Origin: Octopus sinensis
Taxonomy: Eukaryota
Reading direction: 5' to 3'
DNA length: 64,000 nt
NCBI RefSeq assembly: GCF_006345805.1
Contig: NC_043008.1
Location: forward strand, 74,958,001-75,022,000
The notes beneath the pieces were generated by a model, which searched no databases, was not told where the DNA came from, and worked only from the letters and a program-made list of their open reading frames with translations. The translations under genes were made by a program, and so were the position numbers. Of the stretch, positions 13,478-52,489 are shown piece after piece. Every line of letters starts with the position of its first letter. Positions within the stretch are counted from its first letter, which is position 1.

Positions 13478-13639
13478 ATGAAAATGAAGAATGCCGTAGG
13501 GTATATTGCAGCTGCATCAAATCAACTTAGCAATTGTACCAACTGTGGTAGACATAGAAACAGCATTGAACTTGTCAACAGTATTAGTTTTACTAATTGC
13601 AGTAGATGTACTAGTTTTAATAAATCTACTAATGGATGA
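13478..13639 (+). promoter_or_regulatory. Overlapping upstream ORF (53 aa, CxxC-x17-CxxC) plus short uORFs MPR* (13470-13481) and MP* (13491-13499)
   Basis: Direct translation: MKMKNAVGYIAAASNQLSNCTNCGRHRNSIELVNSISFTNCSRCTSFNKSTNG*. The stop at 13637-13639 lies downstream of the main ATG, in a different frame. Confidence 0.5.
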
Positions 13640-13680
13640 GAGTGAGCAGCAGTCGATTCCTGACCAAGTGACTGTTATAG
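13632..13680 (+). CDS. Coding exon 1 of C2 + Sec5-like IPT + coiled-coil protein (MDESEQQSIPDQVTVI); exon spans 13466-13680 including 5' UTR
   Basis: Pyrimidine tract + CAG acceptor ending 13465; ATG at 13632 is the first in-frame ATG after an in-frame TAG at 13497; donor AG|GTATGT at 13681. PDQVTVI+VHNAKGL resembles the first strand of Rab11-FIP C2 domains (PTHVQVTVLQARGL, recalled). Confidence 0.85.
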
Positions 13681-14301
13681 GTATGTATTAACTAAATTTC
13701 TGTACTTTGATATATTTAATGTTTCTCATTTATATAATTTGGTTTGTATTTGGGTATGCCTATCTGTGTGTGTGTACATACATACACACAAGCACACTCA
13801 TATATATGCATGCATACATACATACACATACGCGTGCGTGCACATACATGGATGTACATGTGTATGTAATGTTTGTTCAGACGGTGAGAAGTTCTAGGTT
13901 AAGTTCTAGAGTTGATGAATCTTTAAATTTTATATAGCAGAAAGAAATATATTTCCTGCTTTATCAACAATATCAGTGTTTTAATGCCTATTTTCTCTTT
14001 AGGTATGGGTTGAATAGGTCTGCACTCTATGAAATCATCACATGTATTAATCTTCTGTTGCCTTATCTGTAACTCCAACATCCTGACATGACAATCCCAC
14101 TCACTCACTCACCCAGCCTTGCCCTGTGTATTTATTTCCCAGTTTTCTATGATGGTCACCTTCCCATTCTGGGTTACATCACTTTTTCACCAAGCACTCT
14201 ACTGTTATTCATACATCACATGGCCATATCATTCTAAACAGCTCTCTTGCATACACCACATATCCATATCATCACAACTACTTATTCTACATACTTTACA
14301 C

Positions 14302-14733
14302 ATAGGCGTAGGAGTGGCTGTGAGGTAAGTAGCTTGCTTACCAATCGCATAGTTCTGGGTTCAGTCCCACTGCATGGCACCTTGGGCAAGTGTCCTCTCC
14401 TATAGCCTCGGGCCAACCAAAGCCTTGTGAGTGGATTTGGTAGACAGAAATTGAAAGAAGCCCGTCGTATATATGTACAAATATGTGTGTGTGTGTGTGT
14501 GTGTGTGTGTGTATGTTTGTGTGTCTGTGTTTGTCCCCCCAACATTGCTTCGCATCTGATGGTGGTGTGTTTATGTTCCTTTAACTTAGCAGTTCAGCAA
14601 AAGAGACTGGTAGAATAAGTACTAGGCTTACAAAGAATATGTCCTGGGGTCAATTTGCTCGACTAAAGGTGGTGCTCCAGCATGGCAACAGTTAAATAAC
14701 TGAAACAAGTAAAAGAGAATAAAAGAGAAAGAG
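14302..14733 (+). mobile_element. SINE family A, full length
   Basis: ataggcgtaggagtggctgtgaggtaag head through tgaaacaagtaaaagag tail. Confidence 0.9.
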
Positions 14734-14859
14734 AATTTACAAGAGCGTGCTGAAAAGTTCTTAGCTTTGGGTAAAAGAAAATACATGAGAATCAGTTAAT
14801 TATGATTTTATTTAACATATTCCCCTCTCAGATTCACACACTTATTCTTTTCTACTCTA

Positions 14860-15061
14860 GCCACAAGGACCGAAACTTTTGGGGAGTAGGACCAGTCAGT
14901 TAGATCGACACCATTGCACAACTGGTACTTAATTTATTGACCCTGAAAGGATGAAAGGCAAAGTCGACCTTGGCAGAATTTGAACTCAGAACGTACCGGC
15001 AGAAGAAATACCACTAAGCATTTTGCCTGGCATGATAACAATTCTGCCAGCTTGCCACCTT
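14860..15061 (-). mobile_element. SINE family B, minus strand
   Basis: actggtacttaatttattgaccctgaaaggatgaaaggcaaagtcgacc...ctgccagcttgccacctt is the reverse complement of the 12981 copy. Confidence 0.85.
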
Positions 15062-49128: not shown

Positions 49129-49330
49129 TGGCACAAGGCCAGCAAGATCAAGGGTGAGGGTAAGTCAATTACATTGACCCCAGTCCTCAACTGGTCCTTA
49201 TTTTATCAACCCCAAGAGGATGAAAGGCTAAGTTGACCCCAGTAGCATTTGAACTCAGAACATAAAGACAGATGAAATACCACTAAGCATTTTGCCCAGT
49301 GTGATAACGATTCTGCTAACCTGCCACCTT
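49129..49330 (-). mobile_element. SINE family B, minus strand (its first ~94 bp recur at 50690-50783)
   Basis: caactggtccttattttatcaaccccaagaggatgaaaggctaagttgacc...ctgccacctt. Confidence 0.8.
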
Positions 49331-50784
49331 ATAAATAACAACTTGTTATTAGCTAATATTTCTCTTTCTCTCTCTCTCTCTCTATATATATATATGTTCA
49401 TTTGGTCACACACACACATACATCACCATCATCTTCACTGCTGTCATTGTTATCATCATCACCAATATCATCATCATCATTTTATGTCTGCTTCCTATGC
49501 TGGTGTGGGTTGGATGGGTTGTCTCAGTTCTGAATACTAATTTAGAGTTACTACCCTCTTAGACATGTTCAAGGACTGTACTTTGCTCCTGTGGCTGGAT
49601 TCTGTCCCTAACATCAACCACTTCACTGAATGTACTGGGTGTATTTTATCATAGTAGCTTCACCAGATAAGTTGTCATGTCTTCAGCAAGAGTAAAGAAC
49701 AATCTTGTCAAATCTGAAGTGTTTCTGTTCATTGAAGACAGCATGAAAAAGAGGAGTGAATGGTAGAGTTATAAAAGTGTGTGTGTGTATGTGTGGTGGG
49801 GGTATTATGACATGGAGAGCAGTGTGATAAGAGTGTAATGGGGAAGTGACGGAGGACTGACTGAAATAGCAGCTTGTGCATGTTACCAGTGTATGAGAGA
49901 GATTGAATGTTAATAAAGGTGGATAAGAGTGTAAGAGAGTTATGGATGTCAATACTGATGGCCTGGGAAGGCTATCAGCATAGAAAGTGAGATAAGTGGG
50001 TGTGTTAGTTATGGATAAATCAAGTAATATCCCTCATACACAGGTATCTTGATGGGAGAGACAGGTAGGATAGGGGTAGATGTGGGTTTTAGAATATGCT
50101 CATGTCCACAAATATCCTCACAACATGGGTAACATGATGTTGTGAGTGGAAGATGGGCTAAATGGAATGGTGGAGTGTAAAAGCTGGAGAAATTAAGGTC
50201 ATTCCATTCCTAACTGTATAGTGACCATGATAGAGTAACATTGGGTGACTGAAAGAAGAGCATGCAGTGCGAGTGATGAGTGATAAGAATGGTAGGTAGA
50301 GACAGAGTGTGAGTGACAGGTGACTGAGAGTAGGAGGTGACTGTTTCAGATAGGTGGGAAGAAGATAGAGGGTTATCAGACAAAGATGCAATTGTAAATA
50401 AAAATCACTCAGCATTAATGCCTTGTTTTAATGTTCTCGTGCTAATGTTATCCAACAGAGAAATGTGTGTAGTTAATCATTGCTAACCATCTCCATCAGG
50501 AAGCTCAGCATCTTAAGATTGGTGTTTGTTCCATATCTTCCTTGGTCTTTCTTTCTTCCACATTTAGAACTTCCTTATACAGCATTCATTCCCCCTTATG
50601 CATTATATTGCTGTACCAACAGTCTTCTCTGATTTCTCTGATTTCTCTATCTATCTATTTATTTATCTATCTATCTATCTAATCCTTGTTTGGCACATGG
50701 CCAGCAAGATCAAGGGTGAGGGTAAGTCAATTACATTGACCCCAGTCCTCAACTGGTGCTTATTTTATCAATCCCAAGAGGATT

Positions 50785-52000
50785 ATGTATAAACACCCTT
50801 GGGCAAGCTGCATGGCATGAGTACACTTGCTCATACAAGCAATCCTGTACAACACGCTCAATCAAATAAGCCTAACAACAGATATAGGAATCAGGATGTC
50901 CTCTGGTTCAACCTGATTTTCAGTTTGCATGTTTCAACCAAGATCGCCGGAAAATATTTTGCTGCTTTGGACAGGTATTTTCCTAAATCTAATCGGTATC
51001 ATGCTATTTTTAATTGACACACTCTGAAGGTATTCTATGCCAATTCTGCTAATTTAGAGCAGCTTATGCATCACATGAACAATAGCAAAATGTGGCAAAG
51101 GTTCAATAACCCACCTACTGGATCTAGTGAACATTTGCATCTAAATACCAACCAAGGAGATATAAACCACAAGGATAAACATCAACTACGACCAATTTGT
51201 AGTAGTAGAAATACTTATGATACAGCTAGCATGGTAACAACGCTGGTAAATGGAGTCAGGACTGACTTATATACTAATAAATACAATAAATGCTCATGCA
51301 GAGAAAAATCAAAATGTGCTTTAATGAATCTCTGTATGAATACAAATCTTGTATATAAATGTACTGTGCACACAAGGGGCGGGCCCTATGTTTACATTGG
51401 GCAGACGGCTTTAAGACAGTCAATAAGAGACATTGACCATCTTTGGCAGATTTTGTATGGCAACTGAAGGACGATAAAACAAAGTACAGCATTAATTGGT
51501 CCATTGTAAATTATGTGAAATCATGCAAGATAATTTTCAGGAGATGCCATTTCTGCTCCGAGGAATCCCTGTCTATTCTGTGGACTAACAAGAAGATAAT
51601 TAATAGAATTTCTTAATAACTCTCAAGATGCCTTCATGCATATAAATGTACTTTCGCACAATGCAGTGAGAATGAATTTTGAGTAACTGTTAACTTAATT
51701 TAATTTACTTTAAGGTATGGATGACTTAGGTTTACTTTTAAGCTCCCCATTTTTATAAACACCAAGCTGATAAATAACTCACTTTGTGATGATGAGTGCA
51801 TCAAAGTGATCATGAGTGTATGCTTTGTGATCATGAGTGTATGCTTTGTGATCATGAGTGTATGCTTTGTGATCATGAGTGTATGCTTTGTGATCATGAG
51901 TGTATGCTTTGTGATCATGAGTGTATGCTCACATTTTTGCGAATGCTTGCATGAGCGAGTGTACTCATGCCATGCAGCTTACCCAAGGGCGTTTATACAT
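50785..52000 (+). mobile_element. Penelope-like element fragment (GIY-YIG endonuclease region) bracketed by 56-bp inverted repeats
   Basis: RNQDVLWFNLIFS...YFPKSNRYHAIFN, CSCREKSKCALMNLCMNTNLVYKCTV...VYIGQT and WQLKDDKTKYSINWSI...CHFCSEE; 50785-50840 is the reverse complement of 51945-52000 with 4 mismatches. Confidence 0.85.
51806..51929. repeat. 21-bp minisatellite, 6 copies (gtgatcatgagtgtatgcttt)
   Basis: Five perfect units plus one partial; a diverged unit precedes them near 51786. Confidence 0.95.
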
Positions 52001-52432
52001 CCATACCTGTTAACAGCTATATTTTTAATACTTTTCTCACTGGATTGTGTATTCGTTTGTTTTTTAGTCATTTGTGATTTCATTTTTGATCTTCTATATA
52101 AATGAAGATATTTCCTCCATCTGGCAGCTTTTCCCTCTACAAATCAGAAAGTTATGTTATGGAACAGTCATTTTTATGAGTTATATTTATTTATCACCCA
52201 ACGAGATACATCTGCACGGCCAGATGCTCCTGAACCAGTTGTTGAGTGTCCCACCCAAGAGGAATTGATGCTAGATGTGTCGAAAGAATTGTCGTGATTA
52301 ATAATAAATTCTCGTATATTCCATCTTCTGTCTTTCATTTGCTGTGTTTCATTTATATATATATATATATATATATATATATATATATATATATATATAT
52401 ATATATAAAATATGTGAATACTGTATTTCCAG

Positions 52433-52489
52433 ACTGGAGTGAAAAAGCTAAGTTTGCTGAACTGGAACGTTTACAAAAGGAAAACACAG
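52433..52489 (+). CDS. Coding exon 6 (DWSEKAKFAELERLQKENT), start of a predicted coiled coil; gene apparently continues beyond the window
   Basis: gtatttcCAG acceptor and AG|GTAAAC donor; phase 1 matches exon 5; charged helical peptide. No convincing next exon found in 52490-64000. Confidence 0.7.

Follow-up and report, generated by a model that had tools for sequence, protein, structure and literature searches.

A candidate Rab11-FIP-like adaptor with a Sec5-type IPT domain encoded in the genome of Octopus sinensis

The stretch of DNA analysed here, hereafter the window, comprises 64,000 nucleotides (nt) from Octopus sinensis (NCBI RefSeq assembly GCF_006345805.1, contig NC_043008.1, positions 74,958,001 to 75,022,000 of the forward strand), and all coordinates below are counted from its first letter. 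It contains exons 1-6 of a seven-exon gene, whose product combines an N-terminal C2 domain, a central IPT domain of the Sec5 type and the beginning of a C-terminal coiled coil, an assemblage pointing to a membrane-trafficking adaptor related to the Rab11-FIPs.

Exon organization of the gene

A homologue search identified the O. vulgaris protein P0001 (578 amino acids, aa), with 97% identity to the first splice model, as well as orthologues in O. bimaculoides, Argonauta, decapodiform cephalopods, gastropods, bivalves, a chiton and Hydra. Exon borders were set by tblastn of P0001 against the window together with inspection of the junctions. This yielded six exons on the plus strand between positions 13632 and 52489, in exact agreement with the initial annotation, which had proposed six phase-compatible exons with the same start and end:

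13632-13680, + strand: exon 1 (E1), start codon, MDESEQQSIPDQVTVI and one base of the codon that continues in E2; initial beta-strand of the C2 domain; GT donor at 13681.
19929-19964, + strand: exon 2 (E2, 36 nt), VHNAKGLQGKKPG; basic loop 1 of the C2 domain; placed by tblastn against P0001 residues 17-29 and AG/GT borders.
20810-20915, + strand: exon 3 (E3), RHKYSVIFGFGNKKYRTSVVKDPKGNPVWNEESV; core of the C2 domain; placed by tblastn and splice sites.
23343-24474, + strand: exon 4 (E4, 1132 nt), end of the C2 domain, linker motif, IPT/TIG domain and a disordered Ser/Pro-rich region.
To about 23544, within E4: end of the C2 domain.
About 23659-23739, within E4: linker motif SNLNKRISRSFHDIFS.
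About 23818-24093, within E4: IPT/TIG domain.
34885-35122, + strand: exon 5 (E5), disordered, with the mollusc-conserved basic motif EGRFRKNFFKHMRTASD at about 34915-35007.
52433-52489, + strand: exon 6 (E6), DWSEKAKFAELERLQKENT; start of the C-terminal coiled-coil helix leading to the Rab11-binding domain.

Every exon has its AG acceptor and GT donor, the phases carried by the junctions (1, 1, 2, 0, 1 and 1) are compatible throughout, and the introns measure, in E1 to E6 order, 6248, 845, 2427, 10410 and 17310 nt. Once spliced, the exons amount to 1618 nt, or 539 codons with no stop, and their translation corresponds to P0001 residues 1-539 with 99-100% identity per exon. In the tblastn alignments, identity reached 100% for E1 (residues 1-16), 98.9% for E4 (residues 62-441) and 100% for E5 (residues 442-520), and the substitutions were few, such as A/T at residue 72 and Q/R in the linker. 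The open frame at 23266-24546 (1.28 kb) carries the Pfam IPT/TIG match (E 1.4e-11). The last coding exon (ALRQENADMKAYIEKLLAKVLHHCPEALAADNELTLSQC) was not found in 52490-64000 by tblastn of P0001, and the seventh exon lies beyond position 64000; judging from the last exon of the orthologue, the downstream sequence expected to join E6 is ALRQENADMKAYIEKLL….

Domains and motifs of the encoded protein

The N-terminal region of P0001 was recognised by the Pfam C2 model (residues 12-93, 38.2 bits for a cut-off of 22), and an AlphaFold2 model, for which 25 family sequences were aligned, displays a beta-sandwich at residues 10-130, with a predicted local distance difference test (pLDDT) score of about 95, which Foldseek matched to C2 domains of the PDB at E about 1e-8. 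In the family alignment, residues K27, G29 and R30, encoded by E2, are nearly invariant, while F37, G38, G40, K43, T46, W58, N59, E60 and E61, encoded by E3, are invariant. Most Ca2+-ligand aspartates are missing, among them the usual ones of loop 1, GRHKY standing in place of the SDPY of Ca2+-binding C2 domains, loop 3 is shorter, and the invariant basic residues of the family fall in GKKPGRHK and PHKK. Because the loop-1 aspartates are missing and the basic residues are invariant, we infer that this C2 domain binds acidic lipids without Ca2+. Such predicted binding would fit the behaviour reported for the C2 domain of class I FIPs, which has affinity for phosphoinositides as well as phosphatidic acid (PMC4678287).

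The initial annotation had described this domain as Rab11-FIP-like, and the C2 fold was borne out. Its assignment to the class I FIP type was dropped, as the human FIP1, FIP2 and FIP5 C2 sequences, used as a lead only, scored 53-57 bits against the family C2 profile and thus no better than Munc13-1 C2B (59 bits). These class I sequences align across the entire C2 domain. In the PDB, among whose entries there is no Rab11-FIP C2, the same profile matched E-Syt2, Munc13-1, myoferlin and Syt7, and a database search with the C2 profile alone returned two matches, with no named canonical Rab11-FIP among them.

The second folded unit is an IPT/TIG domain spanning residues 223-314 (Pfam TIG at residues 225-300, 44 bits), which AlphaFold2 modelled as a second beta-sandwich (residues 222-315, pLDDT about 92, range 85-95). 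In a phmmer comparison of P0001 with all PDB chains, the Sec5 Ral-binding domain (1hk6/1uad) came top with 43 bits over its full length, whereas the best plexin domain, that of plexin-A1, reached 26 bits with its first two-thirds covered. A profile built from 26 family IPT domains assigned 90.4 bits to Sec5, as a single full-length domain, and at most 48.1 bits to any single plexin IPT, the plexin alignment again covering the first two-thirds and ending before the last strands. The IPT domains of plexin-A and MET were the next-best PDB matches, and their summed scores resemble the score of Sec5. Foldseek comparison of the model with the PDB returned, as first non-C2 match, 1uad_C (template modelling score 0.87, root-mean-square deviation 1.8 Å, 35% identity), which is Sec5 complexed with RalA. 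The IPT domain groups with the Sec5/EXOC2 Ral-binding domain and not with plexin/MET repeats, the grouping that would have spoken against the initial annotation, and no known domain is closer to the exocyst Sec5 Ral-binding domain than the family IPT. That annotation had seen the likeness in the second half of the domain, by comparing the strings DIVTLRICD, LEYESSGQIYC, HGDVIIETSLGG and GFTL, all located in E4, with Sec5 strings, which were found in an HMMER alignment to match the PDB sequence of 1hk6/1uad. The Sec5 type was retained, and the resemblance extends over the entire domain.

The residues of Sec5 that contact RalA were then compared across the family. In the work of Fukai et al. of 2003, Sec5 Arg27 reportedly pairs with RalA Glu38. 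Sec5 Thr11 hydrogen-bonds RalA Tyr36, and the T11A substitution greatly weakens binding (bioRxiv 10.1101/2025.08.28.672893). In the octopus IPT, the Thr11 position is occupied by Ser, a conservative replacement, and the Arg27 position by Val, while most non-mollusc relatives retain T/S and R:

Sponges, Owenia, Tubulanus, Ptychodera, second IPT of Amoebidium and several further members: edge strand [VI][TS]G[ILV][SA]P; Arg at the Arg27 position.
Octopus: edge strand EISYITP; Val at the Arg27 position.
Other molluscs: edge strand variable; Glu (most) or Ile at the Arg27 position.
Hydra: edge strand diverged; Thr at the Arg27 position.

The C-terminal module is a long helix predicted by AlphaFold2 at residues 524-575 (pLDDT 80-90). 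As anticipated by the initial annotation, the Rab11-binding domain (RBD) itself is absent from the window; it was found in the octopus orthologue, in its final exon, where the C-terminal sequence reads …DMKAYIEKLLAKVLHHCPEAL, and across the family. Full-length relatives and the last exon of the orthologue end in …[DE]MKxYI[DE]KL[VL]AKV..HCP[ED]AL. With the Pfam RBD-FIP model, Ptychodera (33.0 bits), Oscarella (29.7), Hydra (25.1) and Amoebidium (23.3) are at or above the 23.3-bit cut-off, and several other family members are below it. A 59-position profile of the coiled coil and RBD retrieved the RBD chains of FIP1, FIP2 and FIP3, together with generic coiled coils (such as FosW) at FIP1-like E-values, and was replaced by a 29-residue core profile from 22 divergent members. 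The ten best PDB matches of this core profile, with E-values from 1.9e-4 to 0.095 (0.4 for the match after them), were without exception RBDs of Rab11-FIP1/2/3, namely those of FIP2 (3tso, 6s8x, 2gzd), FIP1 (4d0g) and FIP3 (2d7c, 4d0m, 2hv8, 4uj3 and others), with scores of 24.0 bits for FIP2, 23.8 for FIP1 and 21.2 for the class II protein FIP3. All 22 members have the same Tyr, Pro and Leu in the YID…P..L core, the Tyr being followed by I/M/V/L and then by D/E/N. In FIPs, mutation of the YID/YMD motif blocks Rab11 binding (PMC3279423). These profile matches point to a Rab11-binding domain in the family that is homologous to the RBDs of FIPs, and Rab11 binding by the octopus protein is predicted on the same grounds.

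Outside the C2 domain, the IPT domain and the C-terminal helix, pLDDT falls below 50, notably over residues 318-519, so that about half of the 578-aa protein is disordered in the AlphaFold2 model, in line with the disordered linker and coiled-coil start that had been proposed from the DNA. Two short motifs are embedded in these regions. The first, NFNKKxSxSIHDIFSF, follows the C2 domain, is encoded in E4 and is conserved in the family, with no match in the human FIPs used as a lead. The second, EGRFKKNFxKHxRRASES, precedes the coiled coil, is encoded in E5 and is conserved across molluscs and in molluscs only; this basic motif may be an RRxS-type phosphorylation site.

Transcript support, family distribution and other features of the window

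Evidence that the three modules belong to one chain came from a decapodiform orthologue, P0006 (572 aa), in which C2, IPT, coiled coil and RBD occupy one open reading frame (ORF). Twelve independent RNA-derived Logan contigs (2.4-2.9 kb) carry this ORF without a break, and they must be spliced mRNAs, because the octopus gene spans more than 50 kb. The joining of these exons in transcripts, on which the initial annotation depended, was thus shown in a relative. Transcriptome-derived proteins from the sponge Oscarella and from Amoebidium share the C2–IPT–RBD architecture, and, given these proteins and the P0006 contigs, C2 and IPT are truly parts of one protein. The C2 tail, the linker and the IPT domain also lie within a single exon, E4.

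To delineate the family, 1.84 billion representatives were searched exhaustively with HMMER, domains were mapped with the family's own sub-profiles, and names were looked up. Giant multi-TIG proteins ranked high through summed repeat scores and were removed on their per-domain architecture. A search with the full-length family profile gave at least 30 matches, fewer than the single-sequence search. The initial annotation had suggested searching for the architecture in molluscs and other lophotrochozoans, where it does occur, and its spread proved to be wider. A C2 domain, one to three IPT copies and an RBD were found in molluscs, annelids (Owenia, Paralvinella), a nemertean (Tubulanus), a nematode (Plectus, with the UniProt name 'FIP-RBD domain-containing protein'), a nematomorph (Gordionus), a hemichordate (Ptychodera), a crinoid (Anneissia), cnidarians (Hydra, Nematostella, Acropora), every one of the three sponges checked (Sycon, Oscarella, Ephydatia), the ichthyosporean Amoebidium parasiticum and one EukProt opisthokont. 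Two tandem IPT domains occur in P0057, P0062 and P0163 and three in P0059 and P0070, Amoebidium being among the multi-IPT members. The family is therefore old and holozoan-wide. None of about 20 clusters looked up contained a vertebrate or arthropod member, no systematic test of absence having been made. No protein with C2, TIG and FIP-RBD is known in human or Drosophila.

One oyster sequence, P0043 of Magallana gigas (266 aa), has the C2 domain, the linker motif and the RBD and lacks the IPT domain; it is either an isoform that skips the IPT and so resembles a class I FIP, or the result of a faulty gene model.

Several family members, namely P0001, P0022, P0039, P0070, P0074 and P0216, bear in public records the names 'exocyst complex component 2' or 'EXOC2-like', which are misannotations arising from IPT similarity alone. 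Full-text literature searches combining Rab11-FIP with IPT/TIG or with evolutionary terms found the architecture nowhere described. Consistent with the proposal of an undescribed adaptor made from the DNA, no characterised family of this architecture emerged from the literature searched, and the protein is an uncharacterised variant of the Rab11-FIP kind, already in databases as unnamed or misnamed predictions.

The remainder of the window is AT-rich, with many microsatellites and interspersed repeats, and gave no match in Rfam. An interspersed repeat of about 400 bp, identified at 14201-14700, recurs in both orientations with 68-90% identity as at least eight copies or fragments. It looks like a short interspersed nuclear element (SINE) and accounts for many recurring short ORFs (e.g. 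…GTEPRTM.LVSKLLT…). Intron 5 harbours degraded transposase pieces of the mariner/Tc1 type, which matched the Mos1 helix-turn-helix (HTH) model HTH_48 (25.7 bits), other HTH models and, weakly, DDE_3 and Tc3 HTH. These elements and two further features are as follows:

5794-6180, 15294-15675, 31566-31720, 44485-44639, 58023-58379, 59484-59666 and 59914-60118: copies of the repeat of about 400 bp.
35892-36044, - strand: transposase piece.
38041-38370, + strand: transposase piece.
38700-39020, + strand: transposase piece.
39939-40145, - strand: transposase piece.
About 51806-51930: 21-nt unit, GTGATCATGAGTGTATGCTTT, repeated perfectly in tandem in about six copies, yielding the repeated ORFs MITKHTL / VIMSVCF.
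53949-54125, - strand, last intron: short ORF matching a PHD finger (28.9 bits), probably a mobile-element fragment or pseudogene.

Candidate function and comparison with known systems

This gene probably encodes a cytosolic, 578-aa Rab11-FIP-like membrane-trafficking adaptor equipped with an extra Sec5-type IPT domain. In the mechanism we propose, the C-terminal helix would dimerise as a coiled coil, and its Y-I-[DE]…P..L core would bind Rab11-GTP on recycling-endosome vesicles, as in Rab11-FIP1/2/3. The N-terminal C2 domain, whose fold is well supported, would contact acidic phospholipids in the target membrane with no need for calcium, and the central IPT domain may add a third protein contact. 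The most likely function is that of a dimeric Rab11 effector, tethering or targeting recycling vesicles through its Ca2+-independent C2 domain. Regarding the third contact, Ral-GTP is a plausible partner in most non-mollusc members, because the Thr11 and Arg27 positions are kept, and the partner may have been altered or lost in molluscs, where these positions are Ser and Val/Glu/Ile. The Ral/exocyst link suggested by the initial annotation is weakest within molluscs, where the Arg27 equivalent is lost.

Several observations weigh against this interpretation. The exon encoding the RBD is outside the window, the P0001 RBD scored 12.9 bits (residues 536-565) with the Pfam RBD-FIP model for a cut-off of 23.3, and the octopus motif, in the sequence AYIEKLLAKVLHHCPEAL, is YIE, not YID. 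The C2 domain is not demonstrably of the FIP type, and the transcript support, derived from a decapodiform relative, is indirect for this octopus. Finally, the Arg27 position, occupied by Val in octopus and in most other molluscs by Glu, would argue against Ral binding, so that a Ral-type partner, plausible for the ancestral protein, is doubtful for the octopus protein.

The automatic database names, and the fact that Sec5 is the best PDB match for the IPT domain, might suggest that the protein is simply the exocyst subunit EXOC2/Sec5. The domain content refutes this: the similarity is limited to the approximately 90 residues of the IPT domain, and a Pfam scan of P0001 (E up to 1) detected C2, TIG and weak coiled-coil or RBD-FIP matches with no Sec5 helical domain. 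EXOC2 is also about 920 aa long, whereas the protein described here has 578 aa, of which half are disordered, starts with a C2 domain and ends in a FIP-RBD-like helix. It is likewise very improbable that an ordinary plexin/MET-type IPT, or a chimera of adjoining genes, produced an artefactual fusion. The rank of plexin-A and MET as next-best PDB matches, with summed scores similar to that of Sec5, would be in favour of such an origin; against it are the per-domain scores, the top non-C2 structural match to 1uad_C, the presence of the C2 tail, linker and IPT in E4, the full architecture on single RNA contigs and in the sponge and Amoebidium transcriptome proteins, and the lack of Sema, PSI or kinase domains in the Pfam results.

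A more serious objection is that the three modules could be present in a protein other than a Rab11 effector, its C-terminal helix being a generic dimerising coiled coil and the C2 and IPT domains a scaffold for another pathway. The sub-threshold RBD-FIP scores of the octopus protein and several other members are compatible with this, as is the 59-position profile, which scored FosW-type coiled coils as high as FIP1. We nonetheless regard it as unlikely, since trimming of the heptad region left Rab11-FIP RBDs only, Tyr, Pro and Leu are invariant in 22 members, four members reach or pass the Pfam cut-off, and the Plectus member bears its FIP-RBD name in UniProt. Alternatively, the family could be directly orthologous to the class I Rab11-FIPs (Rip11, FIP2, RCP), with an ancestral IPT domain lost in vertebrates and insects; it would then be the original form of a known family, and otherwise an old paralogue. 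The shared order of domains, in which C2 opens the chain and the RBD closes it, speaks for orthology, as do the class I RBD scores slightly above that of FIP3, the alignment of class I C2 sequences over the whole domain, the occurrence of the family in sponges and a unicellular holozoan, and the oyster protein without IPT. However, the C2 domain resembles FIPs no more than it does Munc13 C2B, and the post-C2 linker motif is without counterpart in the human FIPs compared. Direct orthology, although a real possibility, is on balance somewhat unlikely.

The adaptor interpretation also admits a more ambitious form, in which the family would represent a pre-metazoan coincidence adaptor reading Ral-GTP through its IPT domain and Rab11-GTP through its FIP-RBD, in parallel to or in competition with the exocyst, molluscs being derived members whose IPT partner has changed. 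We consider this form rather unlikely, yet if it were true, Ral signalling would be coupled directly to Rab11 recycling vesicles. Under such a scenario, the family may share its ancestry with Sec5's Ral-binding extension, and it would have escaped study because it has not been seen in vertebrates, flies or yeast.

Beyond these alternatives, the broader relevance of the family lies in the control of recycling and polarised exocytosis, in which Rab11-FIPs on one side and the Ral–exocyst axis on the other figure among the main regulators, with links between them that have so far been indirect. The association of a Sec5-type fold, a Rab11-binding domain and a C2 domain on one chain suggests a direct and testable Rab11–Ral–exocyst link. 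The distribution of the family among sponges, cnidarians, spiralians, ambulacrarians and an ichthyosporean also bears on the origin of Rab11-FIPs and of the metazoan-specific Ral-binding extension of Sec5.

The closest known systems include the class I Rab11-FIPs (Rab11-FIP1/RCP, FIP2 and FIP5/Rip11), which also have an extreme N-terminal C2 domain, a long disordered middle and a C-terminal coiled coil ending in YID…P..L. In contrast to these proteins, family members insert one to three Sec5-type IPT domains between C2 and RBD and possess the linker motif NFNKKxSxSIHDIFSF, to which molluscs add their specific basic motif; the octopus protein has YIE in its motif and Cys-Pro for Thr/Asn-Pro, and neither NPF motifs nor a myosin-V region were recognised. 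With the extracellular plexin and MET repeats, the family shares the IPT/TIG fold, together with PxIxxIxPxxGPxxGGTxxTIxGxNLG as an N-terminal pattern, but no signal peptide, Sema, PSI or kinase domain was detected in what appears to be a protein of cytosolic design. With Sec5/EXOC2 (PDB 1UAD, 1HK6), it shares an IPT domain aligned over some 90 residues, and many non-mollusc members retain [VI][TS]GISP in the edge strand as well as TIRG, the motifs that hold Thr11 and Arg27. Unlike Sec5, in which the IPT domain is N-terminal and a helical exocyst domain is present, the family carries its IPT domain internally, with no such helical domain.

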